NCBI GenBank assembly: GCA_028023455.1
Contig: JAQFVV010000009.1
Coordinates: forward strand, 12,400,001-12,464,000
DNA length: 64,000 nt
Reading direction: 5' to 3'
From: Epiperipatus broadwayi
Taxonomy: Eukaryota; Animalia; Onychophora
Below the pieces are notes generated by a model. It was not told the DNA's origin, made no database searches, and saw nothing but the letters and a program-made list of their open reading frames with translations. Every line of letters begins with the position of its first letter. Within the stretch, counting starts at the first letter, position 1. Below, piece by piece: positions 17,036-58,720 of the stretch. The translations under genes were made by a program, and so were the position numbers.

Positions 17036-17103
17036 GACTGGTTTATGAAGAAGTATGTTCTTTTGTGCCCAAGCCTCTTTGTGATGATCTCAACGAACAT
17101 TGA
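17036..17103 (+). CDS. MAPK14: Terminal coding exon A of a p38 MAP kinase (alpha-L16 helix and C-terminus)
   Basis: Strong acceptor (ctttatcttctttcccttcccag|). The phase-1 frame reads x-LVYEEVCSFVPKPLCDDLNEH*. Human p38-alpha last exon as recalled is [22 protein letters not shown], with the same phase and the same 21-aa length; 11/21 residues are identical. Confidence 0.85.
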
Positions 17104-20100
17104 GACTCCGACTAACTTTGCTGTTCATAGTGGGAAGGGTCTTCATTTTTGCTCTCTTTCTTCTATCTAATAGGTCATGAAGCAATTATGAAATAGACTT
17201 AAAATTAGAATGTCTTGTATGACATTCAAAAATCACTGACACTCATTGATAAAATTCATACTGAATTACTATTTAAACTAATTTTAAGCCCAACTTTTTT
17301 TCTAAGTCGAATATTGTACATAATTTAAAGACTTGAAGTATATTCGCATTTGATTTTTTTTTTTTGCTTTTGTTTTAAAGCACCAACCATTCATTTCAAC
17401 ACTTTTACCCATATTTTGTATATAAAAGGCAATCGTAACTGATAAATTTTATTTAACGTTTATTAATTTTAATTTACATTCCAACAGTAAGTTAATATTC
17501 AACTCTACAATATAAAAGTAAATACCATTGTAAAGAAAGTTTGAATCATTTTGGGTTTAATAATTTTTGCTTGCACATCTTTGGGGGGAGGGGAGACGTT
17601 CACTAAGGGGCAAAAAAAAGTATATTATTTCTTTGTTGAAATTTAGAAATTTGACAATGAATTTTGAGATTATATAATATGATTTATTTTTAAATTAGAG
17701 AAATAAAGTTATACTACCATGATAGTATAACAATCATAAGTATTAAATATGGACAAGGTTAAATTAGTGAATAAGGAGAGAAGGAAGTTATAGATATATA
17801 ACTTTAATATTTTAAAGAATTTGGAAATATTGCTTGTAATAGTGAAGTTGTAAAATATTGACCTGTATATAGTTTAATTTCTTAAAAAGTTTATACAATA
17901 TTTTGAAAACAAATATTTACTTTTTTTAAAGAGTTATTAATTTTTGTATATAAAATGCTTTTTTTAATGATATAGATACTTTATTTCAAATTATCAGTTA
18001 ATCTGAATGATAAATTGAGATAATGAAATACTTTTTAAGAGTTTGGTCAGAAACACTTTGTAAAATCATTAACAAATTGTATTTGAGATGAAATGTTTCA
18101 TTTAAAGATTACAAAATGTTTAAGTGCCCAAATTTTTTATGCTGTAATGCTATTTATAAGCCTTAAATTTTCTACTCATTAAAGTTCACAATAGTAAAAA
18201 AATTTCATTTGATCTTAATGGTATAAAATATTTATTAAAGTTTTTAATGCTACTGAAAATAGTGAGATATCAAAATAAATTGTGTTAAGGGGATGGAAAA
18301 CAAATGTAACTAATAAGTTTTCTCACTTGGTTATAGAACTTCTAGGCATAGTTAATAAATCTGCCTTTAGGCAAGGAACTTAATCATACATATGTGCATG
18401 CATATGTATATATGAAAGTCTACTACATAAAATGTCTTCTACATAAGTTAAAAAAGAATGCTATTTTTGTTTATATTATGCATTGATTTTGACCCATTAA
18501 TTACATCAAAGCTGTGAATAGTTCTAATTATAAAATAAAACCATATAATATTTAAAAAATTAAATTAGTAAACTTGAATTGTGCTGGTAAGTATTAAATA
18601 CTGATAATTTATGTAAGCTAGGGATAACTGCCATCAGAAAATGATGAATACTCAATCAGAAATAATCTACATATCCATATACAGACTACTTGTTTGACCA
18701 TAATGATTTATGTAAATTTTGCAGATTCAGCTTTCTTTTTTTTTTTCACTAACTTAAAAACTCAAATTTACAAAATTCTGCCACAAATCTGATTAATTCT
18801 TGATAATACTCTCTTGTCTAATGTTCTAATGGCCTATTAAAGTAATATGAACTTTGTTGTTACTTATTCTTTATAATAATAAGCTTGAAATTTGTGTCAC
18901 TTAATTTTAATGAGATAATAAATATATAAGTATTTTTTGTCACTTCAGATTATATATAGCATTAACAGAAGTTATTCAGTATAATATGATTGTATTTAAT
19001 GATCATAAACTTTAAGAGGGACTTGTGTATATATAACCATATTCACATACATGTATAAGTATAAAGACCTGCATATACATGTATATATACATATTTAAGC
19101 TCATATATACTGAAGTGTTATTTCTTTATGAAGTAGAGAACTATCTCAAAAGTCTCTCATTTACTAAACTACTCTGTCAATGTAAATTGGTTTTCATATG
19201 TTTTTAATCCCAGCCATTATAGGTTAACAAATCAACAACTGCAGTCCATAACTTTTCCAGTCTATAGCTTTTCATTTTAATAGTCATATAGTTTCTGTGT
19301 ATTTATGGATAATTATGTGCTTACAATCTAAGATGAGGTCGGGACAAAATTTCATTATTATGTAGATACTTAAATTGCTTTCTGCAGTTGCAATTTTTAT
19401 TAATATGTAAATTACGTTTTTGATATCAGCACACTTAAGATCTAGAGTCCACAGAAATGTATTAATATTCATATTATCTTAATTTGAAGACTCTAATAAA
19501 TATGGCAAATCGTACTTATATAATAACTTGGCTTTTTTCCTTTTAAATTTATTTGCAACTTTTAATAGATATACTAAAAATAACATTGATTTAGATTGAA
19601 ATTATCGAATCAAATGGCTCTGATAGCGTAAATATATTGTGTGTGCATATATATATAGAAAAAAATAAAAGCAAATTTAAATATTAATTAGAATATGTAA
19701 TGTATATGTTTTAAAATATGCATTTTATAAAGAAATTTCTTTATTATTCCCAACTAGATTTTGTAATAATTTTTTTAATCTAGTTTCGATATAAAAATGA
19801 TTTTAATTTTGTGGTTGTATATACATGTATCTTCACACACCCTTCCATTAATAAATAGGTATTTCATAAGTAATTATTTACTTAAATATCTGAGATATAA
19901 ACATGTGTTCTTGGCAGGTTTTGCAAGAAATATTTATTTTTGTATTTGATAGTGAAGTTCATAGCTTCTGTAACAAATCATTGAATCTTGTGAGAAACCA
20001 AATCATTTTTAGTCAAGTTTGTCATACTGATCTTGCATTTCTTTAAATAAAGTAACTGACAATATTTTATGTTGGTAAAGATTTCCACTTCACATTTAGA

Positions 20101-22957
20101 CTGATGGATCATACATATTAAATTTTTTTAATACATTTAAATTATATACACTATGGTACAAATATCATTAGTGAATCTTTTGATATGACTTATTAATACT
20201 GTTTATTAAATTCATTTTATTTAAAATTTTATGGCGTACAGTATTTTCAAATTAAAATGAGTACTGATCGTAAAAATAGAAAAAAATGTTCTAAACTGAT
20301 GATTTCCAGTTTATTATGAAAGTTCATAATTTTAAAATAATTTTATATTTTAATGTATATAGATTAAAAACTATAGCTAAAAATTTGACATTTTGATTTA
20401 TTTGAATAACTTCTATATAAGTCACTTGACTTTTCAAAAGTTTTTTTTAATTAGTAAAGTATGTATTTGTTTAATTTTTTTTAAATATGTTTTCAGGATT
20501 TTTAATTGAAAATAATTTGTAGTATTTTATTCATTAATTATATCTATGAGGAATAATTAATAATTCTAGGGCAGACATAGGTGATTTGCAACCTGGGACC
20601 CACATACGACTCTATGATTTTCTGTGAAAAACATTTAATTCATGATAATAGCAGCATAATTAAAGATGCTACATAAAACTTACATTAATTTTTTTTAAAA
20701 ATAATTATATTTTGGTATTTTTATTTGTGAAAATTTTCTTTTAGTTACATGGTCCAATTTATCATGAGAATATATCATGATATCCATTGCTTGAAAAAGA
20801 TTGCCTGTGTGTGCATATTCTAGAAACAGAAAGTTTTTTTTTTTTTTTTGTGGATGTTTAATAATAAAAATTAACTAATATCAGAAACATATCAGTATGC
20901 TGGTAGATTTTTGGTATTCAGTTAATGTGTAAAAGTGATGCAAATTATATTTAAAAATATTTTTTTGGTATGATTTGACTTATGTAGTAAAGATTATGAG
21001 AAATATTTGAGGATTTTTTCAATAATTAGAGCAAAGTATATTGAATTTTCAATTATAAATATTTAAAATCATTTTTTAAATCCTTTTTAATTTTTTTTTT
21101 TTTTTATTGCTTGCAATATTTCCATTTTCAGAATTTTATTGTAAAATTAATAAAAAACCACTCAAATTAACTTTAATTAGCAATAATTTATTTTATTATT
21201 TTAAGATAGTTGGGGTTTTTTTCCAGAAATCTATTTATTATTTTCTAATTAATAATATATTTAAAATATAAATATATTTATTCTTTTTGTTTTTATAAAG
21301 ATACATTATACCTAATTTTGTATAAACTTTGACAAAAAATTTTTGCTCAATTTGGTTGATATGTTTTTTTTTTCTTTCTCTCTTTCCTAATATCTATTTA
21401 TTTTTTTCAAAAGCAAAATGTTGTTTTTTAACTTGTCTTACTACTAATAAAATATCATGGACTAAACCTTTAATTCTTATAAAAAATAGAATTTAATTTG
21501 TATTTATTTTTGTTTATAAAGTATAAAAAATAAACTACTTTTTAATCTTTTATTTGAAATTTATTATTATTATTATTATGTGTGTCAATTTTGATTTATT
21601 TTTAATTTTCAACTGAATACCTTTGGGTTTCATATATCAGCCTGCTTTAAAAGTTCTATACAGTGGTAATATAATCCTGTATGATTTAATGCAGTTATAC
21701 AGTGATGGAGCCTGGAGCTCAAGGTTCGTGGATTGTGGATGGGATTCTATCACTTCTGGTGCTCAAAATTTTTATAAATTCCTGAGCAGTAAATTATTTA
21801 ATTACTTTAAATTGTATTGTCCAACTTTCTCTGAAAGCCATATGTTACCTTCCACTATTAGATTATAATGAGATTACTAAAATATATAGGAATTCTCAGT
21901 TAGTTTCAAGTTATTACATGGGTTGAAATAATAAGCAGTTGCCTTTGTCTGGAATAATTAGAAACTGATCGCCAAGTCTAATGAAACCGCTTGCATATCA
22001 ATCTATTTACTACCTATCTTAAATAGTCTTTGTAACAATAGATAGCACAACTATAGAAATTGAAGTTTTAGAGAAAGATGTTTGACTACTTTTTTACTTA
22101 TCTTAAATTATTTATGTATGTGTATATATATATATATACATTTTACAGAATGTCAGTACATCATGTAAATAATATTGATCTGTTGACTTATTAAGCTGAA
22201 GATTTCAATTGCATTCTGAAGTATAATTAGTATTTGCAAAATATGAATTCTTTTCATGTTTGTTGGAATTTTCTAATCACCTCAATGGTTCTTAGATAAT
22301 CTTGAGATTATTAAATGGTGTTTGATGTTATGTGATGTTTTGCATTAAAAAACAAAAAGAAAATGTCTTCCCTATGTACTTAATTGTAAATATATTTGAT
22401 ATCTGATAAAGTATTTATATGTATTCAATATTGTTATATATATATATTCCCATGGAATAATGTTTCCAATGTATAATAACAACTTATGTTTTCAGTTTCT
22501 TGTTTTAGACATAACTTATTCTAAACTTTGCAGTCAATATATTTTAAAACATTTTATTTTACCCAAGATTTATTGAGTTAATTCTTTCCATTTTTTTCTA
22601 ATGTTGAATTAAATAATATTATAGAAAAATCAATGTTTTAGAAAATTACATTATATTTATATGGAAGTTCATAAATTCTAATTATGAAATTGAAGAATAT
22701 TGAATAAATTTTTTGATCAAAAAATAAAGTGAAGAAAATAATGTATTTATTTTAATTCTTTTTTTTTCTTAAAAAGACATATTTTTGAATTATAGTGTAA
22801 GTTTTTAACTATTTATTTGCATATACATGAAATTTTTAAAAATGTTATTGAACCATGTGAATATGTATGCTGTTTAAACAATAATACTACAATGTCTTTG
22901 TGCTTTTTTTATATGTGATATAGAGCTCGCAAAATAAGCTCATAATAAGCTTTTTGA

Positions 22958-23020
22958 GAATATCCTCAACTCCAGACTGGTTTCTGCTTCTGGCATCATC
23001 AGTGAGGTGCCATGATATTC
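22958..23020 (-). ncRNA. Minimal type I hammerhead ribozyme (copy 1)
   Basis: The minus strand reads gaauauc-auggca-ccuca CUGAUGA ugc-cagaa-gca GAAA ccag UC uggag-uugag-gauauuc. This gives the core, a 3-bp stem II, a 1-bp stem III with tetraloop, and stem I with an internal loop and a 7-bp extension. Cleavage is predicted after GUC (plus coordinate 22975). Confidence 0.75.
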
Positions 23021-23368
23021 AGCATTAGATTAAAAACACTAGGGCAAGCCCAGCACTTTATCTAATGTATAACTTTTTTTTATATGTTTATTATCTAATA
23101 TATAACTATTGAGTAGAAAATCTGAAATTGTCAGACATTCATATGTCTTCCAATCCAGCTATCTAACTCAAATAGCTATATGGGACTGAACTAAGTTCAG
23201 ATACACCATATATTAATAGCTTTAACAATATAAAATCGCCAAAGCCTTAATAGCAAAAAATAAAATGATAAAAAATCAAGTCAGATGTCACATGACTTAA
23301 TTTAATAAAGCTTGTATTTACAAATGTTATATATAGAGCTCGCAAAATAAGCTCTTAACAAGCTTTGA

Positions 23369-23431
23369 GAATATCATCAACCCCAGATCGGTTTCTGCTT
23401 CTGGCATCGTCAGTGAGGTGCCAGGATATTC
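23369..23431 (-). ncRNA. Minimal type I hammerhead ribozyme (copy 2)
   Basis: The minus strand reads gaauauc-cuggca-ccuca CUGACGA ugc-cagaa-gca GAAA ccga UC ugggg-uugau-gauauuc. Stem I is fully paired with one G:U. Cleavage is predicted after AUC (plus coordinate 23386). Confidence 0.78.
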
Positions 23432-23459
23432 AGCATTCGATTAAAAATACTAGAACAAT

Positions 23460-24330
23460 TTAAAACTTCAACTGTCTAATCTACTATTATCTTTTCTAAC
23501 AATACCAATTCCATTTCAGTCTCTTAATTCTTTCAATGTTGGCAATGATACCTGTTATTTCATTTTTGATCTCTTCTTGTTATTTCTAATATATATTTAT
23601 TCATATTTCATTGAATAGTCTGAAGTCTGTGTTGGTCTTTTGTTATATATCAAAGTCTCAGATCTTTAAGTAAGAACTGATAGAATATATATATATTTAA
23701 AAGTTTCCTTTTCAAACATATAGACATATTTCCTTTTAATACTTAGTTCTACCAAAAGCATTCAAGTTTAATTCTATGATTAATTTTATCCATTAAATTC
23801 TCATCTGTATCAATAATCTGACCAATGTATTTGTAGTTATTAACTTTTCTAATTCATGATTATCAATCTTTATTTTCTTCTATTGAACATTACTTGAATC
23901 TAATCATATTTTCTTTCTTTTATATGGTAAATTTTACAACATTTCCTGAAACTCTGAAGCATTATTTGCAAAGCATTAAAAATCATCTGCAAAATCTAGA
24001 TATATTTAAATAGTCTATTATTTTTTTAGCTTCCCATTTTAATCCACAAAATAGTTTTTGTAAAACTTGTAAAAAGTTTTGGAGATATGAAATTATACGG
24101 ACATATACCCCTTTCAACTTTAATCTTTATAACATTCCCATCCTGATGTAATTACTACTGATGCATTTTGATGACAATATCCTGAGTTTTTAACCTGATA
24201 ATCCAAAGCATAATAGCAATTCATATTCATTGATTCTACTCCACTGTAATAAAATCTCATTTAAATCCAGCTTATTCTTTTGGTTAATTAGAATCCAAAG
24301 TTTGCTGTAAACAAGTTAAATATTAGTAAT
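23460..24330 (-). mobile_element. RTE-clade LINE fragment (RT and C-terminal part), decayed
   Basis: Ordered minus-strand motifs: ISPKLFT, LDFADD, ELEKVNNYKYIGQ, AFG, IERIKRLKWNW, all typical of RTE-1 ORF2. Confidence 0.7.
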
Positions 24331-24687
24331 TTGTTCCTTTTTAAAAAAAGACAAATTACCAAAATATAAAATATAGTAACAGTTTATGTATGAATATCAT
24401 GCTAAAAATATATGTAATACATTATATAATAAATTATAGTATAGATTTAAAGAAAAACTTAATATTTTCCATTACTATATTTTTATAATAAATACTCAGT
24501 GAAAGAGTGATAGACTTTGAAGATGAAAATTCTTGGAATGAAATTAATCTTGCCATTTCTGGTGCTCTAATGTCATATAACCTTCCAAGCAATCAATCAT
24601 TTGTTTTTTTATTATTGAAATAATAATTTATAAAAATTATATATAATAAGTTATAATTATATTTATCAAGTGCCATGTTTATTTGTA

Positions 24688-24985
24688 ACAGTCATTAGGG
24701 AATTATCGCCCTACACATGCGCTATATGAAATTATACTCTCTTTTTCTTAATGCAAAAATAAATTCTTTGAAAAAATAAGATGAATCCACCTTATCTATT
24801 TTACCTAAATGTTTATGCTTAAGGTTTGCTGATAAATAGATATATATACATTTAGATAAAAAAGATATAGTGGATTCAACTTATCTTTTCAAAAGACTTT
24901 ATCTTGTGTTTATAAAAAGAGAGTACTCCTCAAAACATTAGAAGTTCATAAGTGCATGTATAGGGCATGATTCCCTAATGACTGT
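24688..24985. mobile_element. TA-flanked fold-back MITE, 298 bp
   Basis: TA|ACAGTCATTAGGGAATTATCGCCCTACACATGC ... GCATGTATAGGGCATGATTCCCTAATGACTGT|TA. The inverted complementarity continues to a ~35-nt central loop. Confidence 0.8.
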
Positions 24986-27900
24986 TAAAAATTATAATAA
25001 TAATATTACTAATTTTTTACTACTTTACTTGTAACTCTCATCTGAAAAATTGCAAATAGTACATACTGTTTTAAATTGCAATTTTGTTTATATTATGACT
25101 ATTAACCATTTAAAATACCAACAACAACAAAAAACATATCAAAAATTAATTATAAAAGTACATTAGAGTCTGCAGTAATTAATTAATTGGTTCCAGAATG
25201 CCATTCAGTTAATCATTTGTTGTAGTTTACATTGAAATGTATATATTTAGGAATAATCTGTTCTAGACTCACAGCCAAAAATGAAACTACTATTCAAAGC
25301 AACCATTTAAGCAAGAAAAATATAAAAATGTATAAAATATTGTGTAACGGTAGATTTTAATGAAAACTAAAATTCATCTTTTAAAAATATAAAATAAAAC
25401 CTAATAAATATTCACAGATTGATTTTTTTACTTTGTTGCAAGATAATATTCAGTTGTTTTATCTGCACTATTAGTCTCACCATGAGTCTGATGAACCATA
25501 CTTTTCTATCAATAAAGAACAAAAAAAGCATTTTTATAAAAGTCACCTCATCAGCGCTATCACCTGCTATTTGTTACTGATTGGTCCACATTGACAAAAG
25601 AATTTTTATTTGTTCCACAATGTTACAACATAAACTACCTAAGCTGGACATTTTTTTTATTGTATGCTTTTTCTATTTTTTTTTTAATGGTGTAGTTAAG
25701 TGATTTTAATCTTATTGTATTCAGAATTTATATCATTGACTTATCTTTTAGAATTTTTTTTTTTTTGTTCATTTTAATACTGATCAATTTTTTAACACTA
25801 TTTTTCTGGCTTATGATTAAAATTAATATTTGTACATGTATAAAAGAATTTTTTAAAAACTAATAACATTGAACAATTTATACAAAAAATAAGTCACAAA
25901 TACAATGAAGATGTTTGATGCTTTATTCAAAACTGAAACACTTGGGAAAGTCTTACACATATATTTGTGTTATCAGACAATAATGCTTATAATATTTTCT
26001 ATTTTACATAGTAATATTCATTCATTTAGCAGTTCCATGTTTAGTGCTTATATTTCTGGTACTTTATCATACTTTCATTTTCAATTTTTTTTTTTTAAAT
26101 CAAAATTAATTCAGTTTTCAAATTCAGCTTTTATGACTCATGATAAAATTATTACAATATATACACCTACTGAGAATATTTTTAAAGAAAAATATGTACA
26201 ATATTTTTTAGCATAAAAGATACAAAGAAATAAGAAAACTAATTGTTAATTGAATTTTAGCACTTAGATTTCTATTATGTTACTGTATTTTCATTTTTTT
26301 TTTATCCCAACATTAATTAATTTTCCGTGTCTGTTTTTATGGTTTATGGCCAAAATTATTTTAGTGTTTACATTTAGGAGAATATTTTTAAAGAAAATAT
26401 GTACAATATTTTTACAGTTAGAAATCAGTAATCTAATTAAATTAATAACTAAATTTCAAATGGCAAAAATATCTGCCATTTTAGTATTCATATATTTTGT
26501 ATTATTTATATAAAAAACAATGTTCATTCTATTAATTATTCATTTTCTTTATACCAGACTTCACTGTGTAAATATTAGGTTTATGACTTGGATTAAGATA
26601 AGGGTAACAATTATAAATGATGTGGTTTACATATAGTTTATTATATATAATCCATAAATATTCATCTCAAAAAATGAAAAATGTTTATACATATATTTAT
26701 ATTATTTTTAAACTTGCAGCACCTATCATGCATATGTGTACATTTATACTACATGACAAATATTGTAATTGAATGTATGAATGTATTGCTAAAATAAGTT
26801 TTAAGAGTAATATATATTTTTGTTCTGTAGATATTCGATTGAGGCTCATTATTGAATAGTGCTATATTTCACATTAAATAAAACAATTACATTTAAAAAA
26901 TAGTCTGAAGATTGTTACATTTTTGTTTATACATAGTATACAAACTTTTACTTTAAGAAATAGCTTATAAATTTTAGAGCCACTAGATCGCAGAGAATGT
27001 TGCTCAAATAAAAACTGCCATAAGCTGATGTTAAAAGTGTTAGTATTGTGTTCTTTATTAACTGAAATTCTTTCCAGACATATCAGGTACATCAATTTAC
27101 TATTTTTATAAATAAAAAATGTATTTATTCATTTCTATTGAAATTCGCAATTTTCTATTCCAATTTTTTTTATCTTTCTCAGTGTAGCCATCTTAATAAA
27201 AAAAATGCAAATTAATAATTGTAAAATAATATTCTAATTTTATTTTTGTGAGTATATAGTTAGTCTGTAAAAATCAATATAAAAACAAACTAAATACCTT
27301 CAATATTGGAGATTAAACCTGTAGTCAGATGGACCATACAATATAAATAATTTGTTAGAATATTGCACCTCTGATAGAATGAATTAGAACTATTATAAAG
27401 GTTGGACATACATAATAGAGAAAATAAATATTTTACTACACTTAATTTTTAATTCAATATTTGAACTATGTGCATGTTTAAGTAGAAATTTTATTTACAA
27501 TTTTGAAAATATCTAGGGTCTGTATTGAGGCTTTCGAGTGCTAGAGATTCCCCATTCCTGACATAAGGGAATTATGTACTGTGTGATCATAAAAGGATAG
27601 TAGATATTCTAGAAAGGAGTAAAAAGATATTTTGGACTCAGATGTCTAGATAGCAAATGCAGTCGAACGTAAGCAAAGCAAAAGACCAGTAGAAAATGTT
27701 TGCAATTTATGGGTAGCAATAGAATAGCTAAAACTTTTAATTTGAATAAGGAAATAATAAACAAAAAGTTGGTTAAAAAGTTAAGATAAAGAATTTAGCA
27801 AAGATTTTATATAATTTATCTGTATAAAAAGTGGAATTCAATGTATTATTAGAATTGTACATTACTACAGCTGTAAAAATTGATCAGGAGAATATTATCA

Positions 27901-36064: not shown

Positions 36065-37859
36065 GAAATTGGATATTTGAATATGCAAGGTAGTAGGAGA
36101 CCAGACAAGTGACTGGAATTAAACAAAGCAGTTAAAATGAAGAGTTTGATGTATTAGCAGTAGTGGAAACATCTAAGAGAAGAAGAACCTACACTGGAAG
36201 ACTTGATATGGAAGGATATAAATAGAAAAGAAAAAAGGGGTGTGGTGATATAGAAATTATGTCAAAAAATATTTAAATACAGTTAAGTATCAAGAACATC
36301 TGTGGTGTGAGATAAGGTTATAAAGACTAGAATAGATAGTGGTTATAGTGTATATGGCCACTGGAGATAATTAAACTATAATAGAGTGGAGCTGTAGCAT
36401 ATATGAATGCCTAGTTAAGGATATACAGAGTTTCAAAAAAAAAAAAGGGGGGGGGATAATGGTTATAGGGTATGTGAATGGGCATATTGAAGAAATTGGT
36501 GATGTGGATAACAAGAATGGACAGTTTTTGAAAAAAAAAATTGTCAGAATAAATTTAAACATTGGAAATTTATCAAATATTTATGAGAGACAATGGTCTA
36601 AAAATAATATATTTCACACAGTAGATTATGTATTAGTAAGAAAGAGGGAATGAATAAAGTATGGAAAATTAAAGGGTTTGATAATGAGAGAATATGTAAT
36701 AGTGATCATAATCACTATAATAGAAATGGTTAGTGAAAGATGTGGATGGAGAATAAATGATAAGAATAAGTTAGAAGAATATAAAATAAAAATAGATGAA
36801 ATCATGGAAGAGTTTGTTGGAGATGAATATAACGACTGGTCAGTGATGTAGAAAAAGTGACAAATAGGGTTTTAGGTGAGAATAGTCAGAACAATAAAAG
36901 TAAAAGAAAAGTGAGAACTAATAAAAGTGTAAAAGAGAGGAGGAAAGCATGCAGAGAATATAAATGTGCTATTAACAACAAAGAAAATGAAAAAGATGTT
37001 ATTAAATGGGGAAAATATTTCTAAAAAAAGAAGTTGGCTAAAATAGATAATTATAGAGAGAGAATGAAATTTATTAATAAATTGTTGGAGGATATTAATA
37101 AAAGTGGAAGAGATGGGAGTAAAAAAATTTGGAAATATATTAAAAGAAGGAATGTAGGGGAGAGAGAAATAGTATTACTAGATGGTGAGGAAGTAGAGTA
37201 TAGCTCTAAAGAAGAATTAAAGACAATCTTAAATAAGTATGTAATGGATATCGAAAAGATGTTAGATGTGAATGACAGAGTGATAACAAACATAAAAGCA
37301 TATAGTAATGGAAATATTAGGTTTACAAAAAATGAATTGAATGAGGCAGGGCAGAAGTTGAAAAGTGGAAAGACACGATGTTTAGATGGATAGGCAGTAG
37401 AGATAATGATGAATTTAGGAAATATGACAAAATTAAATCTATTATCATTTTTTAATAAGATGGCACAAAAAAGAGAATTTCCAGATAGCTGGAATAATAC
37501 AAGTATAAATCTACTATTTAAAGGAAAGGCATAGAAAGTTAAACAATTATAAACCGATAGCGATACCAACAGTGTTATATAAAGTTTTTGCATATGTGGT
37601 AATGGGTTGCAAAATGGATGAAAGAAAATAGTATAGTGGGAGAAATGCAAAGAGATTTCAATTGGATAGGCATATAGATAGTTTATTTGTAGTCACACAA
37701 CTTATAGATATGAGTAGGAATACAGGTAGACAGTTATATATGATCTTTATAGATATAGAGAAGACATATGATAAGAGTAAATAGATTATGGGTAAGTTTA
37801 GTAAATTTGGGAATGAATGGAGTTTTAGTGGATATTATAAAGATGTATGAAAATAATTA

Positions 37860-38932
37860 CACCTGGATCTCGTTTTACTCGATAGATAGGTTCCTCAGAA
37901 AACACGTGCAAATGAAATCGCGCAAAAATAGACGTAACTTACATTGAAAAGGGGGGGGATGCAGTCTGTGATTTTTCAAAATTCGCATAAAAGCAAAGCA
38001 CCAACGTAAAATTACTTTAAAATTCGCAAAAAAAAAAAAATAAGGAAATAAAATATGACTAATAAAAAATTTCAAATTTGAAAAAAATTGATACAAGACG
38101 AACTTTTTTTAACTATAATATTTAATTTTATTCAAAATAATATATTTTTATGCATAATTTACAGTACAGTAATTTACATTTTTTTATACACATTTTAATT
38201 ATTATAGCTATTTGCCGAAAAACATGTTTGTTTGCAAACAACTAGCGCCAACTTCACATTCATGTTGTGTCATTGGTTTTCTGGTGACAACGTAATTAGT
38301 AATTAATCTTTGAGAAGATGATTTTATTAATTGTTTATGAAACTAACAACTAAAAATTAAATTCTTTTTTTTTGTCTTTAATTTTCAATTCCGTTTAAAA
38401 ATCAAATTTCCATCACATTAATTTCAAGTCATCATAAGTAATTTTTAAATTGTTAATTACAATTAAAAATCAGATTTTAATTTTTAATTGTCAAATTTAA
38501 TTGTGCCCACTGCTATTACTGACCTTTTAAAAATAAACTTGTGGACACTAAATGATTAATAATTGATTACGTTCTTTTTTAAAAAGCAAAAACAGAATGT
38601 GATTTAAAATGCAAAATTAACACGCACAATGTTTGAACAAATTTACATTATAATCTTGGAAAATTTAATGTGTGTATACATAAAATGTGGAAATCATGAT
38701 TTTAATTTCATTATTGCATAAAATCTTACTATTATAAAGCACTGAAAATATTGAAATTACTAAGATGAAAGTCGAATTCCAATACTGTGCTATTACTTTC
38801 AATATAATGTAAGTGCACGAAATTTATTATTTAAAGTAATAGCGCATTATCGGAGTTCGACTTCCGGTGAAACAGGAATCGCATAACTTCAAAATCGTGT
38901 TAAATAAGTCCGCATAAAAAGAGACCCAGGTG
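37860..38932. mobile_element. pogo/Tigger-like MITE, copy 2 (1073 bp), inserted into an RTEX LINE
   Basis: TA|CACCTGGATCTCGTTTTACTCG ... GCATAAAAAGAGACCCAGGTG|TA. The paralogous LINE copy at ~52990 shows the empty site with a single TA. Confidence 0.88.
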
Positions 38933-39464
38933 TACTATACATATCAATTAGGAAATATAGAATCAGTAAAGTTAAAGTGGGGTGGAACTAAGGCAAAAAT
39001 GCCCTATGTCATCTATTTTGTTTTCATTATATTTGAGTGAAATGGAGAGAGTGATAGAAAGACTAGGAAGAGGGATATACCATTAATAGATGGCAAGGGA
39101 GTATATATATTATTGGGTCTTTATTTGCTGATATGTTCTTGTGCACAGAAAGTAGGGAAGTTATGCTGAAGACGTGCAAGAGTGGGTAAAGAGATGGGGA
39201 TTAAATTTAGTGAAGTAAAATTAAAAATAATGATAAAAGAGAAGAGGAAGATTTTTATTGGGAGATATAAATTTAAATGTGGTGAATGGATATAACTATT
39301 TGGGAATCAACTTAATCAGAGAAATTGCTTGGATGAATGGGGGAAAAATTGATAAATGAAGCAAAGAAAAGAAATTAACAGTTATCATATAATAAATATG
39401 ATGTAACTAGAATTGCATGGGGGCGGAGGTCAGTAGTAGTGAGAAAAAGTATAAAGAGAAGTAG

Positions 39465-40829: not shown

Positions 40830-43800
40830 AGTTATACAAATGAATACTTATAATGTATAAATAATTACTTATTTATTATTATTTATAAATTGTAAATATG
40901 ACTTTGTACAATTTTAGTTTCAAAATACATGTTCATTCACCCTTCGAATAAATTATACAAAGTTACATATCAAATACAGTGTTTCTACTAAGATTTCATC
41001 ACATATATATACAATTCTTATCAATCAAAATACACTGTAATTTACAATGAATCCAATATAATGATCAATAACATATAATAAATCAAATAACATGTTAATT
41101 TACTTTAAACGGAACCTTAGGAGCATAAATGACATCAAATTAACATAAGCCTCCTTTCAGGGCCATTCATCAGAATCAACATCTTTGATTGCACCAAAAT
41201 TAATTTACATAATTTACAATAATATAGATAATTTCTCATAGCAAAACTTATTAAACCAAAGGTCTTAAAACATTACATATAATAAATTTGTGTCTTTCTA
41301 CCATTCTGGTGGGCATCAGTTTCTTCGATTTACATACATTACTTTAACGAAATATCCCCATTTTTGAAGCATTATCACACAGTAACAATGTTTTTCTGCT
41401 TAAATACTTCAGCTGTTGTACTTTTGCATTACTTTCCTTCTCCATCACCTAACGTCCACTCTTAAAAAGTCCTACTTTTCAGCCAATTCTTAACATGAGT
41501 GATCCACTGAATATTCCCATGGCTATACTTCAATATACTCCAGACTTATACATTGTCTTAGATTGATTTGAGACCAAGTTTGATCGATTAGCCATTTTTG
41601 GCAAAAAAAATTGTCAGTATCTTTTATTGTTGTAATAAATAAACTTGTTTTAACTGGGTCACAGTCTTTCTCACTCTCAAAAAGCAGTTTATTTCTCAGT
41701 GTCCAAATACAAATTGATAAATGTTGCTAGTCTAATAATTCTGAAGTGACCTTTCTTAAATGCTTTTATCAAGTGTACGCATGTTGCTTCACCATAGTAT
41801 AGGATTTGATGGCATTATGCAGGCTAGTCCAAATTTTGCACTCTAGTATATGTACCATTGTCTCATCATCCCTTCTACATAAGGAGCATATTGTGTCCAA
41901 ATTATAACCTCTTTGATTATGCAGAAAAGCTGCAGTAGGTAAGGCCCCTAGGTTGACCTTGATCAGACAGTCTATAAATCTTGGTTTTAAAATTTTAATT
42001 GCTTAACCTAGAGAACCTTAAGATCCCAATGGGCAGAAAGTTATCTATTTTCATCTTATTTGGGTTCATAAGTTCCAATAGTTTATTTTGCTATTAAACA
42101 TTGTTGCAGTATTCCTGACCTTAAGATTTTTCAAAGGCAAAGACACTTGTTTGTGTATCCATAGCATCCCACTTTTGGATGGGGGTCAATCTGTCAGAAT
42201 TTCTTTTTTAATAAATCGGACTCTCCATGTCAGGATTATTGATGAACAATTTTACTACAAGAATATTATGAGCACATTGTATCAAACAGGTCTTAATTGC
42301 ATGTAGACCTAATCCATTCAATTGTCTCTAACTCTGCAGGAGCCTTAGGCTGATGACAGGAGCCCCCCCTCAACATAACTTCCTACACTGAGTTTTAACT
42401 TTCCTTATAAAGGTTTTCGTCAGAAAAAAACCCACAAGAAAGTATGTAATCTTTGGGAGCATAACAGCATTCATCAGAGCTATTTTCCTAAACAATGATA
42501 AATATATTTTAGCCAGAGATCTGACAAAATTTGCTGTTTTGATCATTAAACCATTTTCAATATCCTTCCTCATCTTGAATGGGGGGGGGGGAAGCAAGAT
42601 GGAATCCCAGGAACTTCTGAGGAGGAGCTTTGAACCTGGTGGAAATTTGCTTCCTGGTCTTAATTGTACCATATGGCCAACTTCTCATTGACCTTAGACC
42701 AAATTCAGATTTGAATTGGTCCAAGTGCTCCTCAAGCCTTGCAAATTCCTCCTGTGAAGCGAGAAAAAGCATCACATCATCCATATAGGAGATGTGGTAG
42801 ATTCTCTCTTTCAGCAAAGGGATGGCTATCTTCTTAAGAGATGCCTCAATGCTCAGCAGGAGGGATTCACATAGGCAATGAAAAGGACCATACTCAGGGG
42901 TGAGCCCTGAGGAATGGAAACATCAGGCTTGAATCCTGAAGAGACTCTTCCATCCGGAGACAAAAACACCTCCCGATTATGGAGGTTATCATCTGGAGGT
43001 AGACAGCAGGTACCTTGAGTCCCTCCAAGACCCTCAAAAGTATGTCAACTTTGACACAATCAAAAGCTGCAGCAAAGTCAAGCTGTACAGTGACTGGCTA
43101 TGACATCTTCATGTGAATATGATCTACCAAGAGGAAAAATCAGCTCACAGCTTCAGCCATTGAACTCCTCCTCTTGGAAAACTGGTAATTGGTCAGCTGA
43201 TCTATAATGTCTTGAATATCAATTTTAATAAGGCCCTCAACTGCCTTTACTAGTAGAGGAATCATCGATATGAGCCTAAGATTCTTCAGGCTCTGAGGGC
43301 CCTCTAGCTTCTTAACCAGGGGAACCATGGCTATTGGATTGATCCCTGGAAGTTTCTGGCAACCATCAGCCAAAAAGTCAGGTATTCACTTAATAATAGG
43401 TGCTGTAAAAGCACTCAAATCAGCAAGCCAGGGTGAGTCCTTCGGCATCATTCAATAATTCTGTGATCTTATGCATGGAGCCTTCACTATATTAAAGATT
43501 TTCCTGCTAAAGGCAACTCCCTGAAGTTTAAACTTTTCTTTATAATAATCATGTATCCTGGCAAGCATGGAAGACCCTGCAGCATCTTCGCCTTTCTGCT
43601 GGCCCCAAGGGCCCACCTAAAGTAACCCCTGGTCCAGCAATGCTGATGTTGGATAAATTGCTGTGCTCTTTTGACCGATAGACCTCTTTAGGCAAATTCA
43701 TTAATTTTTCAGCAATCTTATCTAACTGATATCATCCGAACAGGATCTCAGGCTTTTGAGGTATATCTGGCAATTAATTTTTCTAAAATCTCAGTAAATT

Positions 43801-48270: not shown

Positions 48271-48349
48271 ATGCTCTAACTTCTTATGAACCCTAAAGCA
48301 ATAAAACCATTCAATTGTTTAATAGATTTTATATTATTATCCTTCTAAT

Positions 48350-49867: not shown

Positions 49868-51599
49868 AACACTGAAACTAATGAATTTATTCATACGATT
49901 TTTATTCTATTTAAAATAATGCATATGTTTATTAGTTCCAGGATTTGATTCCTAGTTTTCATTGATAAAAACATCTAAAATTTATCTGGATATGAAGATC
50001 TTGTAACACCCATCTAATGTTGATTGATTATTTAACTTAAAGTAGATGGAAGAGGGTGAAGATAAATGTTTTTGAAAATATATCATTAAGCATGTGACAA
50101 ATTCATGGCAATAATAATAACAAATAAATATTATTAAAAAATAAATTTGTTATCAATCAATCAAAAGAATAAAAGAAAATGAATTCAATACTTCGATACA
50201 TTAAAAAAATTAAAATTAAAGCTAAAATATAATTGTTAATTAACAATTATTAATATTAAATATGGATTGATTTTTTTTTCCTATTTTCTTTCTATATGAT
50301 CAAATAAAAAAATACATAGAAAACTTCACCAAATTATAGTGTACTTCACTGAGTCATACCTTATAACTCAAAATCTGTTTGTTTACTTGTATACTATTCC
50401 CAAGAAATTACCTACAATAAAAAAAATTAAAAAAAAAAAATCAATTAAAAAATGATTATAGGTTTTGCAAAGTATTGAACTTTTCATCTTGTTGGAATTA
50501 ATTAATTTATATTAGAAAATATTAAGTTATTATTGTCTCAAAATTGGAATGAATCTTGAATATGAGTTAATTCTCTAACCACACGTATTCAGAAAAAATA
50601 ATCATTTTTGATATTCTCTTTTTAACTTGATTAAAAATATGTAATATCCTGTTGCATCAATGCTATCATGATTAAAACATTTGATAATTATTCTTATTAC
50701 ACACTTATTGAATTACCTCACTCATTAATTAACACCCGTTGATAAGACATACTAGGTTAAATAATTTTTTAGAATTATCTTGCAAAGATTATACGCAATC
50801 AAACCAATAACTTGTTACTATTATTATTTTATGACTAGTGTATTTTAAAGAGTTTTAAACTATTGCAGTATCCATATCTTTGTTCTCTGCTGTATTTTTT
50901 TAAAAAGTTGAGAATTTTTTTAGAGGAATAAATTATATCAAAAACATACGAACTACTTTTCTATATCTATGTATTACCATTAATACAACTTCTTTAATCA
51001 CTTTTTACAATGCAATCAAAATTTATTCCTTGATATTTTCTTATAGTTTTGGCTGACCACCAGTCTTTATCAGCACTCCAATATGCAAATATATGTGACT
51101 GTACAATTAGTACATATTTATACATATATAAATAGATATAATTATATAATACATATATAATTTATATTGAAATAAAATACTACTTTTCTACTTCATCTTT
51201 GAGTAGTAAGTAATTTAGATTGCGCTTTACGCAAAAAGTGAAGCTTGTCTAAATTACTTAAATATTTTATATTATAAATTTTACAGAATATAACATGCAA
51301 CTCAGAAATTATTATTTATCTTTATGCATTTTTAACAATTCTATAAATATTAACCTTTTTGTTTCTTATTTTTATTTGATTTCTTTTGTATAAAATGTTA
51401 ATATATATACGGTATATTATTTTACAATTATATAACTTTTAAACTTTTTAATAATTTATTTTTATCATTTTAATTGTTCCATTAAAATTTTAATCATGCA
51501 TTACTTAACTATAATATAATTATACATTTTCCTTTTTTTCTTTTTTATATATATAACCTTACTTCTTTCAACTCTTAAAAACTTTTAACTGCCAAAATC

Positions 51600-54500
51600 T
51601 ATATTGTGATGCGACATCGAAGTCAGAAATCTCTCAGCCAATATGCCTAAGAAAATCCCATGTTCTTCTCTATCCTGCTCTATCCCATTTCCACAACATC
51701 ATCTTTGTCCACTCTATGGCCCTTTTATTTATATCCCCTTATCCTTTGCCAACTTCAGCATAAAGACCAAAAAACCCCTTTCGACATAATCACTTGGTCT
51801 ATATTTATTCTCCCACAACTATTATTTGTACTCTTTCTGCTTGTAAGCATTTACATTCAATTAAAACATATGTAATATTTTCTATGCCTTCCTTACATAG
51901 TCTGCAGACTAAATCCCCCATAATTCTCTATGTGTATATTTTCTTGTTGCTAATGATCCTGTTTGAATAAACAGTAAACTAGTTTTCCTGCTATTATAAT
52001 GTTTACTTTTATAAATATTTAAGCTCTTTTTACTCTCCATACTAGCACTCTAGCTCCCTATTTTTTATTAATGTATCTATTCTTCTATCCCAGTCCTTTC
52101 CACTATAACATTCCACAATCATCCCATCCTATGCACAAGTATACTGATACAAAGCTTTTATCCAAATCTGTTGCATACTGTACTGTCTTTCTCACCCATC
52201 TTGTTGCCTGCCTTTTACTCATAACTCAATTAAATACTATTTTAGTTATTCTCTTACTATCCATAAATTGCAATCTATCGAATATTTTCACTTTGCTTTT
52301 TGTATCTCTCATATAAAAATTTGACCATCCCATTTCTTCTTGAAATACCTCCTTTGCCATCCATGCATCTGCATCTAATGCATGTCTTCCTAATTCTTTT
52401 TGTATTTAGGTAATCTAGCAACTCTTTGCTAACATATAATACATCATTATCATAGGTTAATTCCACTATATCATATTTATTATATGAAAATACTATTAGT
52501 TTCTTTATCATGCCCTTTCTTTTCTTTGCTTCACTTATGAATTTTTTCTCTCATTCATCCAAGCAATTCCTCTCATTACTTAAGATGATTCCCAAATAGT
52601 TATATCTGTTCACCACATTTAACTTAATATTCCCCAAGAAAAAATCTTTATCTTTTTCCCCAGCATTTACCATCATTACTTTGGATTTTTCTTCACTAAA
52701 TTTGATCCCCATCTCTTTACTCATCCCTGTGCAAGTGTTGAGCACAGATTCCACATCTTCCCATTTTCTGTGCATAAGAAAGTATCATCAGCAAATAAAA
52801 GACCTGACAATGTATATAATCTCTTGTCATCTACTAATAGTATCACTATATCTCTTCCTAATCTTTTTATTGTCTTCTCTATTTCTTTTAAATATCACAA
52901 AAACAAAATAGGTGATATAGGGTATCTTTGCCTTAGTTCCACACCATTTTTAACTCTAGCTGATTCTATATTTCCTAATTGATATGCATAATAATTATTT
53001 TTCATACAATCTCTTAATAAAACCCACTAAAACTCCATTTATTCCTAAATTTACTAAATTTAACCATAATATATTTCTATTCATTCTATCATATGCCTTC
53101 TCTACTCTATAAAGACCATATATAACTGCCTACTTGTATTCCTACTCATATCTATAAGTTGTGTGACTGACTGCAAATAAACTATCTCTTATATGTCTAT
53201 TCATTCTAAAACCTTCTAGCATTTCTCCCACTATATTATTTTCTTCCATATATTTTGTCACCCAGTCACCATATATGCAAAAACTTTATACATTACCAAT
53301 GTTACCACTACTGATCTATAATTATTTATCTTTCTATGGTTCTTATCCTTTTCTTTAAATAATAGCTTCACTCTTGTATTATTCCAGTTATTTGGAAATT
53401 CTGTTTTCTGTGCCATCTTATTAAAACATGATAATAGATTTAACTTTACCCTATTTCCCAAATTCATCACCATCTCTGCTGCCCATCCATCTAAATCTCT
53501 TGCCTTTCCAATTTCCTCCCTGTCTCATTCAATTCATTTTCCATAAAACTAACATTTCCATTACTATGTGCTTCTTATGATTGTTATCATTCTGTTCTTC
53601 ACATCCAACATCTTTTCTATATCCATTACATAGACTTATTTAAGATTATCTCTAATTCCTTTCTAGAACTACCCTCTTTCTCCTAATCATTCAGTAATAC
53701 TATTTCTCTCTCCCCTACATTCCTTCTTTTAATGTATTTCCAAAATTTTTTACTCCCATCTCTTCCACTCTTAGTAATATCTTTCATTAATTTACTATTT
53801 AATTTCATTCTTTCCCTATAATTATCTATTTTAGCCAACTTCTTTTTATTGAAATAGTTTTCCCATTTATTTTTTCACTTTTCTTTTGCTTTTAATAGCT
53901 CATTTATATTCTCTGCATGTTTTCCCCCTCTCTTTTACACTTTTACTAATTCTCATTTTTTATTACTTCTGTTTTTCTGAATATTCTCACCTAAAACCTT
54001 ATTTGCCATTTTTCTACTTCTCCACACCAATCCTTATATTCATTCCCAACTCCTCCATATTTTTTTCTACTTTTATTTTGTATTCTTCTTATACTTATCA
54101 TTCACCCTCCATCCATATCTTTCACTCTTCTTTCTACTTTTATTATTTTCCATCATATTACTAACCATTTCTTATTATAAAGAAATTATGATCACTATTA
54201 CATACTTTCTCTTCATTATCAAAAATTTTAATTTTCTGTACTTTATTCATTCCCTTTTTATCAACTAATGCATAATTTATTGTGTGAAATACATTATTTC
54301 TAGATTGTGTGTATTGCCCCTCATAAATATTTGATAAATTTCCAATGCTCAAATTCATTCTCTGCCAAAAAAAATTTTCAGAAGATTGTCCATTCTTGTT
54401 ATCCAAATTATCAAAGTCTTCAACATGTCCATTCATATCCTCTATAACTATTATTTTCTTTCCCTTTTTTTTTTTGAAACTCTGTATATCCTTGAATAAG

Positions 54501-56500
54501 TAGTATTCATCTTTGCTATTGTTCCACTCCATTATAATTTGGACTATCTCCAGTGGCCATATACACTATAGCCACTATCCATTCTTGTCTTCTTAACTTT
54601 ATCTCAAACGATAAATGTTCTTGACACTTTATTATTTAAATATTTTTTTGACATAACTCCTATACCACTACCCCTTTTTTTTCTATTTATACCCTGCTAT
54701 CAAATTTTCCAGTGTAAGTTCTTTTCTTAAATGTGTTTCCACTACTGCTAATACCTCAAGCTCTTCATTTTTGGCTGCTTTGTTTAATTCCTGCCACTTT
54801 TCTGGTCTCCTACCATCTTGAATATTCAAATATCCAATTTTAATTCTTTTGATTCAAATATCCAATTTTAATTCTTTTGATTCTTTCTTCTCTATTATAT
54901 TTGTAGTTAGTTGTTTATCATTAGTTTTACAGACCAATTCCTTCTCCCTATCTACATTTATATCTATATAAGCTACCCTTTGCCATCTATTCTTAACCTT
55001 TTTTTTACTAATACTGTAATTAAAACTCTACCCCCACTCCTTATAAATTTTCCGAACTATAATAGTTTTCATAAATCAAATTTCCTTATGCTTCACTTTC
55101 TTGTTTTGCTAAATGTAATCTATCTTTACTGTATAACTTCCTCTTACTAATAAAAAAAAATCCCATGCATCCACAAACATACCATTATTTCTATTGCATA
55201 GTTTTTCCAACCTCTCATATATAGAACATCCTCTATCTAATATATACCTATTGCTGAATTTTGGTAGTAATCCAACTACTCCCATTTCTTCCTTTAACCT
55301 TATTCAAATTCTAATCAATTCTTTGAATTCATTCATTACTTTTTTCAATGGCTCTGACAAATTATTTGTCCCCACTGTAACACAAACATCTATAATCCCC
55401 TGTTTATTTATGTTATCTATAACATCCCTAATTCTAGTTCCAGGAAAACATATTCTTACATATCTATATTTATTTTCTCTTGCAATTACATTTTCATATA
55501 CTCTTAATTAGAGTGACCCAATAAAGACTATCTCATAGTTTATTTTCCCTATTTCATCTGTAACATTTTTTTAAACCTTCTGAACTTCCTTATCTATTTC
55601 TTCCTTCACACTTCATATGTAACACTTTTAATTTTATTTCTATATCCTTTATCTTTTCCTCTATCTTATTCTTTGGCTAACTATCTCTATTACACTACTT
55701 ATTTTGTCATCTATATCTCTTGTCACTTTACTAAACATATACTCCATTCTATCATCCTTATCTACATTTCCCTCAATTTCTCTGACTTTTTCTTTAAACT
55801 ATCTACACTTAGAAATCATTTTTTCATCTTTTTTATCACATTTATGCATGGTCTACACAACTATACACTTTTTATATCCTTCCTATTCTTATTTAAGAAC
55901 TTCAAATGGAAAATCTTATACTATATACGTTACCAAAGCATACCTAGCTTCCTTCTGGCCATCATACATACATTGTGATATACAAATGCAGTCCATCTTT
56001 TCTTATTTTTCCAATTACCCTGCTTTATATTTAAATTTATGATTTTTCTACCACTTTTAAAATCTCTTTATACAAAAAACATTTTCTATTTTATAATGAA
56101 GAACAAGAAACACTGCTCCCTGAAACTCATACTCAACGTTATCTCTCTTTTTCAAATAAATGTACTCTTTCACTTAAATTTAAAAAAATTTTGTTAGAAA
56201 ATCTCCTAAAATCCAACTAATCTTATATATGACTTTGTTTTAAGGCCTCATTACAATAAACCTAAAAAGAAACATTATATATTTAAGATGTCATCTCAAA
56301 ATCACTCTCCAAATTTCACAATATTTTTCCTCACTCTTTCTAAATTCAATTAAATCTACATCTCTGCACTTTTGTCATCTACTCTCTAAACAGATCTTCT
56401 CCAGCAACAGCAGTTTTTATCTAGATGTTATTAAAATAAATAAAAGTTTAACTTATCAACCATGTCACATTACACCAATCTTCATCTGCTTGTATTATAT
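51600..56500 (-). mobile_element. RTEX-like LINE copy B, near full-length (ORF1 SGNH esterase; ORF2 APE-RT-CCHC), decayed
   Basis: ORF1 motif CFPGTRIRDV....VTVGTNN (55360-55470), APE DMNGHV..NG..INYAL..SDHNF (54161-54532 ORF), EKAYD (~53090), LFADD (~52790), YNYLGI. Homologous to copy A in the opposite orientation. Confidence 0.82.
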
Positions 56501-57067
56501 TTTGTATACTAACTCCCCTATGAGCATTTTTAAAACTATTTCATATTTTATTTTTAATGTATATATTTATTTACTAAACTATATTTTTAATAATTGATAA
56601 TATAGGAATTTTTACACATGTAATATTGGGAAAGGAAACCACTCTTCACACATGCACTACAAAATAGACCCGCACTGCAGATTTCATTATTATTTTCTCT
56701 GCTTTATATAAATAAACACTTTTTATGTTAGTTCTTTTATATTTCAGATGTTTGTATTGTTTGACCAAAAAACAATTTAATCATTGTGTTTACTCATAAT
56801 GGTGGAATAGTTGGGAAGAATAACATCTTTAACAATTATTAGATATACTGAAGTTTTCTTAAAGAATCTTTGTCAAATGTTATTGCAAAATTCTTCTCAA
56901 TTATGCTATTAAACATATATTTAAATTAATATATTAGTCCATAGCACAATTGTTTATAAACTCAAAAATTTTATCTTTCTAATCTATATTCATTGTAGTT
57001 CAAAATAAGGATCAAAACAAGAATCTTTCTTACTTCTATCTTGCAAGATATATTTCATTTTATAATA

Positions 57068-57705
57068 TGTAAGGAGGTACCCAAAAATAATTGGAATTTT
57101 GTAGTAAGAACTTATGTATTTTAAGTGTTATAAATTGAATCTCCTTCAAAGCACTGTCCACTTTTCAAAATAGTTCTGAAACTTTTGCAATGTGATGCCT
57201 TTTAACTCTGCTTCCAAATCCACAAAACTTTTCCTTTGGGGCATTTTTTTATTCAGGAAATAAAAAAAAATCACATGGAGCCATGTTGGGTGAATATGGT
57301 TGATGGGTAAGCTAGGTTATGCAGTTTTCAAAATTAAAAATTTATAATACTCAAGGCTTTGTGTACTGGCATATTCTTGTGGTGAAGCTTGCCCTTCCTA
57401 CCTTGCTACAAATAAGGACATTTTTATTTTACCACATCATGCAAAAAACTTTTTAGAATTTATATGTAAAATAGCTGATTGTTATAAACACATTCTGGTT
57501 GAACAACGCTGTCTCCATCCAAAAATATCAACAGCATCTTGATCTAGAACTTCACTTGCCATGCTTTCCACACCCCACCATAACTTCTCTTGATAATGAT
57601 AGTTGGAAGACAATGTCTTGTAAGAGGCATCTGGCAGCAAAAGCATGTACTACAATACACATCCTCCAGAGAACTATTTCAGTTATTTTGGAGTACCCCC
57701 TCTTA
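57068..57705 (-). mobile_element. Internally deleted mariner element (~640 bp)
   Basis: Imperfect ~30-bp TIRs (TA..AGGAGGTACCCAAAAATAA and TA..AGGGGGTACTCCAAAATAA). The minus strand encodes MLLIFLDG.., LHHKN.P.H, PYSPNMAPCDFFLFP and FEGD, the mariner catalytic C-terminus. Confidence 0.8.
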
Positions 57706-58613
57706 TAATTAACTATTATCATTTCTAAATATTTATGGGGAGATGAATTATGGTTATGATGTTTAAAACTGAGATAATTCTCTCTTTTCTTTTCTTTTTT
57801 TGCCAATATTGTTTTAAATCCAATTACTGGATTTCACTTCCAAATGTTCTTAATTAATCAATTATCATTTTGACCAAACCACTACATTTTCTTGTCTGAA
57901 GCCTAATATATATTAAATCAGTAAGCGGCATGAATTGGGCTCAGTGGATAACATAAAATATTGAATCATTAACTTTAAATATTTGATTACGATTTAGTTT
58001 CAGCTGAAGGTCATAATCCATGGTAATGAATTACTGGAAATTCAATTTTAATATTAAATATTTATTTAACATTTTATAGCTAAATTATTTTAATATTAAA
58101 TTCTATATCAAATGATAAAATCTCTAAGTCTTGTGCTTTAAATAAATGTGACTACTTTTTTAGATCTTTTTCTGGCCATATCTTCATTTTTTTGTTATAT
58201 GTTACCTACAGCTTTTTCTTTTTGGTGGCGGTTTTATATTAATGATTCAAAATATTACCACAGTCATATGGTTTTTTGCCTGACTGAATGTTGTCTGCTT
58301 TTAATCATCAGTCTAATATCTATGAGTTCATGTATAATAATGATAAAAAGAATTTTTCTCAGACTAATGGAAATTATACTGATAATAAATGTGATTTGCT
58401 ATAGAGCAAAAGGTTTAAAAGAAAATTTGGGAGAAAATTTTTTTGAACCAAATGAATAAAATTATTATGCCTCTTTGCTACTCACATCTTGCATGCTCTC
58501 TCAAAAAATTCAGCATACATTAAATAAAATTAAGAAATCTTAATATTTATCTTTTTAATGTGTTTTTTATGTATATTGATTAAGTATACATGAGGTTTTT
58601 TTTTATTTTGTAG

Positions 58614-58720
58614 GCCTAGTTCATAAAGAAGTAGTGATGTTTCAGCCAAAAGTACGACAGTTACAAGGTGGCTTATCACAGGCACTACAAAATCAAAGGC
58701 ATTCATACTACAATCCATGA
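58614..58720 (+). CDS. MAPK14: Terminal coding exon B (alternative last exon) of the same p38-like kinase
   Basis: Strong acceptor (gtttttttttattttgtag|). The phase-1 frame reads x-LVHKEVVMFQPKVRQLQGGLSQALQNQRHSYYNP*. Its first 12 residues follow the MAPK alpha-L16 pattern LVx(E/K)EVxxFxPK shared with exon A, and the intron phase is the same. Confidence 0.72.

Follow-up and report, generated by a model that had tools for sequence, protein, structure and literature searches.

The question raised by this locus is whether a single gene for p38, a mitogen-activated protein kinase (MAPK), can choose between two different last exons, and with them between two different C-terminal ends. The window, by which we mean the whole stretch analyzed, comprises 64,000 nucleotides of the onychophoran Epiperipatus broadwayi (contig JAQFVV010000009.1, positions 12,400,001 to 12,464,000), and all coordinates given here count from its first letter. 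It contains a proximal last exon of p38 type, exon A, and a distal candidate, exon B, 41,578 nucleotides apart and both on the + strand. Exons of this type encode the alpha-L16 (L16) segment and the tail that follows it. In MAPKs, the L16 segment lies packed against the N-lobe, and in p38, mutations there cause spontaneous activation; the tail beyond it differs between vertebrate p38 paralogues with different partners. Our reading is that a very long p38 MAPK gene has its 3' end in this window, that it can finish in either of two terminal exons, and that these exons go back to an old duplication; we place the probability of this reading at about one half.

Exon A provides the reference point. 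Its acceptor, cag/GA at 17036, is preceded by a polypyrimidine tract (tract and acceptor at 17012 to 17035, + strand, sequence cttctttcccttcccag) with 95% pyrimidine at positions -23 to -4 and a C at -3, and is accordingly strong. The exon is read in phase 1, with GA completing a split codon, and continues as LVYEEVCSFVPKPLCDDLNEH up to the stop at 17101 to 17103. The coding part (17036 to 17103, + strand) specifies a canonical acidic p38-type tail that ends in PKPLCDDLNEH, with a net charge of about -3 after PK. At 39.7%, its G+C content rises above the 24 to 28% of the flanks and the 26.9% of the window as a whole, and the open segment around it measures 35 residues.

Exon A is also placed within a transcript by sequencing runs, whose status as RNA is a guess. 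The run designated X1 contains 0.32 of the sampled words from 16500 to 18500, corresponding to about 650 nucleotides, and seven further runs contain 0.06 to 0.20 of them. As the share in X1 equals the size of exon A plus a 3' untranslated region (UTR) ending after the AATAAA at 17702, it indicates that exon A is a real terminal exon. Exon A and about 0.6 kilobases (kb) of 3' UTR are transcribed, as judged from contigs of the eight runs, and the probable 3' UTR (17104 to 17725, + strand) extends to the first AATAAA, at 17702 to 17707. Within the exon itself, GAAGAA/GTATGT (17047 to 17058) resembles a good 5' splice site, probably fortuitously. A route from exon A to exon B through the donor-like GAA/GTATGT at 17053 was considered and rejected, as the frame meets a stop two codons into exon B.

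Does exon B have the same build? The preliminary description, made from the letters of the sequence, had reported two phase-1, stop-ended exons 41.5 kb apart, and on re-reading both the coordinates (17036 to 17103 and 58614 to 58720) and the peptides are as it gave them. It had also called both acceptors strong, which is true of exon A, but the acceptor of exon B, tag/GC at 58614, is moderate, with 70% pyrimidine and a T at -3 (T-rich tract and acceptor at 58590 to 58613, + strand, sequence tttttttttattttgtag). Exon B is in the same phase as exon A, with GC completing the split codon, and then reads LVHKEVVMFQPKVRQLQGGLSQALQNQRHSYYNP to the stop at 58718 to 58720. Its predicted coding part (58614 to 58720, + strand) carries the L16 segment in the wording LVHKEVVMF, retaining the L, V, E, V, F, and P of that segment, with K-E-V as in p38-gamma and p38-delta and an H in place of the usual Y or F. 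The tail that follows is basic and Q-rich, with 22 residues, a charge of +2, and six Q.

The immediate surroundings of exon B are those of an exon. Its coding G+C content of 39.3% stands against 24 to 28% in the flanks and forms a local peak that coincides with the exon, a level reached by only 1.6% of the 107-nucleotide windows between 55 and 61.5 kb. As an in-frame stop lies at 58577 to 58579, 12 codons before the acceptor, the frame is bounded upstream as an exon would be; it is open for 35 codons, for which the local chance is about 0.08. We counted the rise in G+C, which is like that of exon A, together with the 35-codon open frame, in favor of alternative last exons. Downstream, AATAAA signals occur at 58922, 58981, and 59077. 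Exons A and B are thus each found with an acceptor in the same phase, a stop of their own, and a downstream polyadenylation signal, as is found in pairs of alternative last exons.

The resemblance of the two peptides to each other and to p38 has to be separated into what each comparison can carry. The shared pattern LVx(E/K)EVxxFxPK pointed out in the preliminary description is real: over their first 38 nucleotides the exons agree at 24 positions, and the peptides are identical or similar at 9 of their first 12 residues. Scored without gaps under BLOSUM62, A and B reach 32 over 13 residues, the best non-self match in the window. Yet this score was reached in 6 of 30 order-1 Markov shuffles of the window, so that the A-B similarity by itself is not significant. 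Alignment of the flanks of the two exons showed no residual similarity and gave AT-rich noise only; a recent segmental duplication of the region was rejected on this ground, and any duplication would have to be old. We infer a duplicated origin of exons A and B from about 12 residues and the shared family signature, and not from direct similarity between the two.

A comparison that does not depend on exon A is more telling. For each of the four human p38 paralogues we took the 11 residues with which the last exon begins, combined them in a profile, and scored all six-frame 11-mers of the 64 kb. Exon A leads with 34.25, ahead of exon B at 29.5 and the next match at 24.25, and among shuffled windows the score of exon A was reached in 0 of 200 and that of exon B in 3 of 200, at any position and in six frames. 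That A and B are the two best matches and share the same phase was counted for alternative last exons. The acceptor context narrows the choice further: of 137 AGs on the + strand with a pyrimidine content at least that of the exon B acceptor, 64 are open in phase 1, and among these 64 exon B scores 32 against the exon A peptide, followed by 14. Exon B is in this sense the sole acceptor-adjacent phase-1 open reading frame besides A that resembles the tail, which we likewise counted for alternative last exons.

It could be argued that the resemblance is due to chance and that exon B is unrelated to p38. The shuffles that match the direct A-B score speak for such an explanation, as does the lack of any match for the exon B peptide in the PDB, a library of protein representatives, and the ESM Atlas. 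Set against this, the independent profile score recurs in so few shuffled windows and the G+C content of exon B is exon-like. Moreover, the strand is the right one, exon A lies upstream, and the match starts exactly 2 nucleotides beyond an acceptor-like site, of which there are only 137; for a match of this kind to fall exactly in phase behind an acceptor, the joint chance is of the order of 1e-5 or below. We regard coincidence as very unlikely. Taking profile, phase, acceptor, and composition together, on which the case is built, we take exon B to be a true p38-type L16 and tail exon.

If exon B belongs to p38, it can be asked which kinase core it would serve. The claim in the preliminary description that no other kinase exon lies between A and B was borne out. 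Strict kinase hallmark patterns (HRDLKP, DFG, APE, DxWSxG, RWYR, VAxKK, and others) brought up no p38-like match in the 64 kb, whatever the frame, and fuzzy scoring of six kinase hallmark motifs gave best scores not above those of shuffles on either strand of the whole window, although a strongly decayed copy could escape such scoring. From this absence it follows that no second intact p38 gene lies between A and B and that exon B is without a kinase gene of its own nearby. The upstream penultimate exon, described earlier as ending in EWK, is not within this window, and the last intron is consequently longer than 17 kb. The DEP-containing open segment at 25475 to 25591 was weighed as a possible copy of the penultimate exon and rejected, as it is without other p38 residues.

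The missing core also bears on the proposal that exon B ends another transcription unit and not the gene that uses exon A. Such a unit could be a second p38-derived gene with its other exons beyond the window, a transcript that is chimeric or promoted by a retroelement, or a paralogous locus elsewhere. Against this proposal, no kinase-core motif is present in the 41.5 kb upstream or the 5 kb downstream of exon B, and a p38 tail exon in phase 1 needs a phase-1 kinase donor, for which the only known candidate is the upstream p38 gene on this strand. We consider a separate unit unlikely, and return to it below with the contigs that bear on it.

The interval between the two terminal exons (17726 to 58589) is made up mostly of retroelement debris, also contains a direct repeat, and would be intron-like if exon B is used. 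Decayed copies of non-LTR retrotransposons with matches to RVT_1, Exo_endo_phos_2, and zf-RVT lie on the - strand at 41772 to 43385, 51800 to 55500, and, beyond exon B, 61868 to 63546; family-matched fragments of the three domains are found on that strand at 41.8 to 43.1 and 52.5 to 54.5 kb, and the copy at 62668 to 63546 gives the best reverse-transcriptase match (E 5e-18). Further decayed non-LTR sequence lies on the + strand at 36600 to 39200. The fragments are thus mostly antisense to the p38 strand. Antisense orientation of retroelements is usual inside transcribed introns, and we counted its predominance in the interval for alternative last exons.

Other features of the interval were noted in their own right. 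Two direct copies of about 125 nucleotides, 90% alike, lie at 22918 to 23042 and 23331 to 23453 with a spacing of 413 nucleotides; no Rfam family was found anywhere in the window, and neither a hammerhead nor another family at this repeat (22918 to 23453) even at E values up to 1. Unique G+C-rich islands are present at 21600 to 21870 and 57470 to 57710 (at least 39% in 107 nucleotides), with open frames of 55 to 93 residues on both strands that have no family assignment, and the second island is uncovered in the four runs compared for coverage around exon B.

Whether exon B is transcribed was approached through the coverage of 56000 to 61500 by contigs of these four runs, X1 and X2 to X4, the latter three from a close relative (organism B). 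The runs are only guessed to be RNA, and the silent bins between covered ones argue against DNA. The clearest signal lies just 3' of the exon B stop, where an X1 contig of 355 nucleotides matches 58760 to 59114 with 1 mismatch at a depth of 11.2 and ends about 35 nucleotides past the AATAAA at 59077. Runs X2 to X4 cover the same block, which is thereby seen in four runs and two organisms, and the block is unique in the window. As judged from these contigs it is transcribed, and the region from the exon B stop to its end (58721 to 59114, + strand) is the probable exon B 3' UTR, with the AATAAA at 59077 to 59082.

The bins around this block are largely silent. The bin before exon B (58392 to 58575) has a depth of 0 in all four runs, as does 60416 to 61151, and in X1 the depth is 0 from 59128 to 59495; such patchiness is as expected of RNA rather than DNA. 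The bin that holds exon B (58576 to 58759) reaches a depth of 19.8 in X1 and 3.3 in X3. The coverage gives the picture of a weakly expressed terminal exon. We counted the contigs over exon A and its UTR and over the unique block, plus the depth in the exon B bin in X1 and X3, for alternative last exons. In the three organism B runs, contigs depart from the window at 58912 and rejoin it at 59049, and each brings 255 or more unlike letters, which points to an insertion or replacement in the putative exon B 3' UTR of that organism.

Several of the same data, together with the shuffles and the unlike flanks described above, weigh against two alternative last exons in one gene. No junction or loose end at 58614 was seen among the contig rows listed for the four runs, and the exon B bin has a depth of 0 in X2 and X4. 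The depth in X1 is itself ambiguous: one contig follows the window as far as 58754 and beyond that point has at least 255 nucleotides that are absent from the window (TTTTTACTCAAAAATTAACTAG...), and this diverging contig falls outside the class of 99+% identity. The fully matching X1 contigs are two, 58145 to 58354 and 58760 to 59114, and they already explain the 0.11 share of words in X1, so that little room is left for exact exon B coding words. Over the coding part of exon B, the contigs may offer no more than a short or inexact piece. Finally, no protein with tail B was recovered in two protein searches, both of which are nearly blind to full-length isoforms.

The contig that diverges at 58754 could come from an allele that carries an insertion or from a paralogous locus, or it could be due to an assembly fork or graph artefact. 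A splice-site reading of the contig break at 58754/58760 was rejected, as there is no GT or AG on either strand. An X1 contig that is less than 99% alike and leaves the window past 58754 fits a paralogous or variant locus, and a paralogous locus supplying it would be one form of the separate transcription unit considered above.

A further explanation would be that the p38 gene, or its 3' end, was long ago duplicated in tandem and that the copy has decayed, with exon B left as a recognizable but unspliced relic; the block at 58760 to 59114 would then be noise or a small transcript that has no connection with it. Tandem pairs of p38 paralogues are frequent in vertebrates (MAPK14-MAPK13 and MAPK12-MAPK11), the well-matching X1 contig begins at 58760, 40 nucleotides past the stop, and not at 58614, and the failure to see a junction, the silent coding part in X2 and X4, and the unrelated flanks would all be accounted for. 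A relic that had lost all flank similarity would, however, not be expected to keep a frame of 35 codons, an in-phase acceptor, the structural residues of the L16 segment, and a G+C peak, and the transcribed block adjoins exon B and is unique rather than a repeat. Decay of this kind is in our view improbable.

Searches for either tail in known proteins and structures were of little power. Among PDB sequences, peptide A, peptide B, and a two-row profile of both found chance matches only (E of 0.5 or more), the peptides being too short. With tail B as the query against 1.84 billion representatives, an exhaustive phmmer search gave a single match, spurious and of low complexity; the search is uninformative, as isoforms collapse in the 50% identity clusters of that collection, and the ESM Atlas gave no usable match to tail B. 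The 46-residue open segment around exon B had no candidate among proteins of 25 to 80 residues, and a degenerate DNA pattern for KEVVMFQPK had 0 matches in metagenome contigs. Five open reading frames taken from the UTR regions of both exons and from a retroelement, looked up exactly, matched no record, and a search with a reverse-transcriptase fragment gave nothing at an E of 1e-10 or better.

When these results are placed together, the proposal of one p38 gene with duplicated alternative last exons stands as to exon type, phase, the absence of a second kinase core, and RNA over exon A and over the block after exon B; it falls short as to a junction into 58614, of which none was seen, and as to the duplication, which is drawn from about 12 residues. 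We infer the sharing of a donor, the splicing of exon B at 58614, and any functional difference between the tails. It can be hypothesized that a shared donor upstream of the window, which leaves 1 nucleotide of a codon, would by default join the strong proximal acceptor at 17036, with cleavage after the AATAAA at 17702 yielding the short acidic tail. In a minority of transcripts, exon A and its polyadenylation site would be skipped, and the same donor would join the weaker acceptor at 58614. Use of exon B would then give a complete kinase with the same core, a swapped L16 segment, and the basic, Q-rich tail of 22 residues, and this isoform would have its own 3' UTR ending near 59.1 kb. It seems to us almost as likely as not, and we put it forward tentatively, that one invertebrate p38 gene in this way yields both an alpha-like (acidic) kinase and a gamma/delta-like (basic, Q-rich) kinase through duplicated alpha-L16 terminal exons 41.5 kb apart.

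Comparison with known systems helps to place such an arrangement. Vertebrate p38 paralogues have the same last-exon signature, [LV]-[TV]-[YF]-x-E-V-x-x-F-x-P, followed by an acidic tail in MAPK14 (p38-alpha) or a basic tail in MAPK12 (p38-gamma) and MAPK13 (p38-delta). Judged from the paralogue sequences and the profile test, the likeness of exon A is to the alpha type and that of exon B to the gamma/delta type, with K-E-V, F-x-P, and then R-Q-L, although tail B is without the PDZ-binding end of p38-gamma. In vertebrates the different tails come from duplicates of whole genes, whereas here the last exon alone would have been duplicated and one kinase core would serve both.

Exip and Mxi2 are the only reported splice variants of p38 (PMC8699841). 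In Mxi2 the last 81 residues are replaced by 17 unrelated ones, and in Exip the last 106 by 53 (PMC8699841). The pair proposed here would, like these, consist of C-terminal p38 isoforms that arise from alternative 3' processing. It would differ from them in outcome, as Mxi2 and Exip lose the L16 segment and much of the end of the C-lobe, whereas the kinase proposed here would be complete, with its L16 segment exchanged for a homologous one. If true, the pair would be the first among p38 isoforms to exchange this segment instead of deleting it.

A second parallel is offered by JNK genes, which have mutually exclusive duplicated exons 6a and 6b as well as short and long C-termini (PMC8699841), and which likewise obtain isoforms from one MAPK gene through duplicated, mutually exclusive exons and different tails. 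In JNK the duplicated exons are internal and the difference in tails is an extension, so that two separate events are involved; at this locus, the duplicated exon and the change of tail would be one event coupled to alternative polyadenylation.

In mechanism, the arrangement would be the same as in skipped-terminal-exon pairs at large that have arisen from tandem exon duplication, in which the proximal and the distal exon carry a stop and a polyadenylation signal each and share a donor and a phase; exons A and B form a candidate pair of this kind. A swap of homologous L16 exons coupled to alternative polyadenylation lies outside the reported p38 variants (PMC8699841), while its mechanism, provided the swap is proven, is that of an ordinary alternative-last-exon pair. 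A gene that exchanges the L16 segment and tail in this manner would amount to a natural experiment with an identical core, in which the contribution of this region to activation, docking, and localization could be measured. If the reading holds, exon choice and alternative polyadenylation would achieve in one onychophoran gene what vertebrates do with separate paralogous genes, and the locus would show how tail diversity could come before whole-gene duplication.

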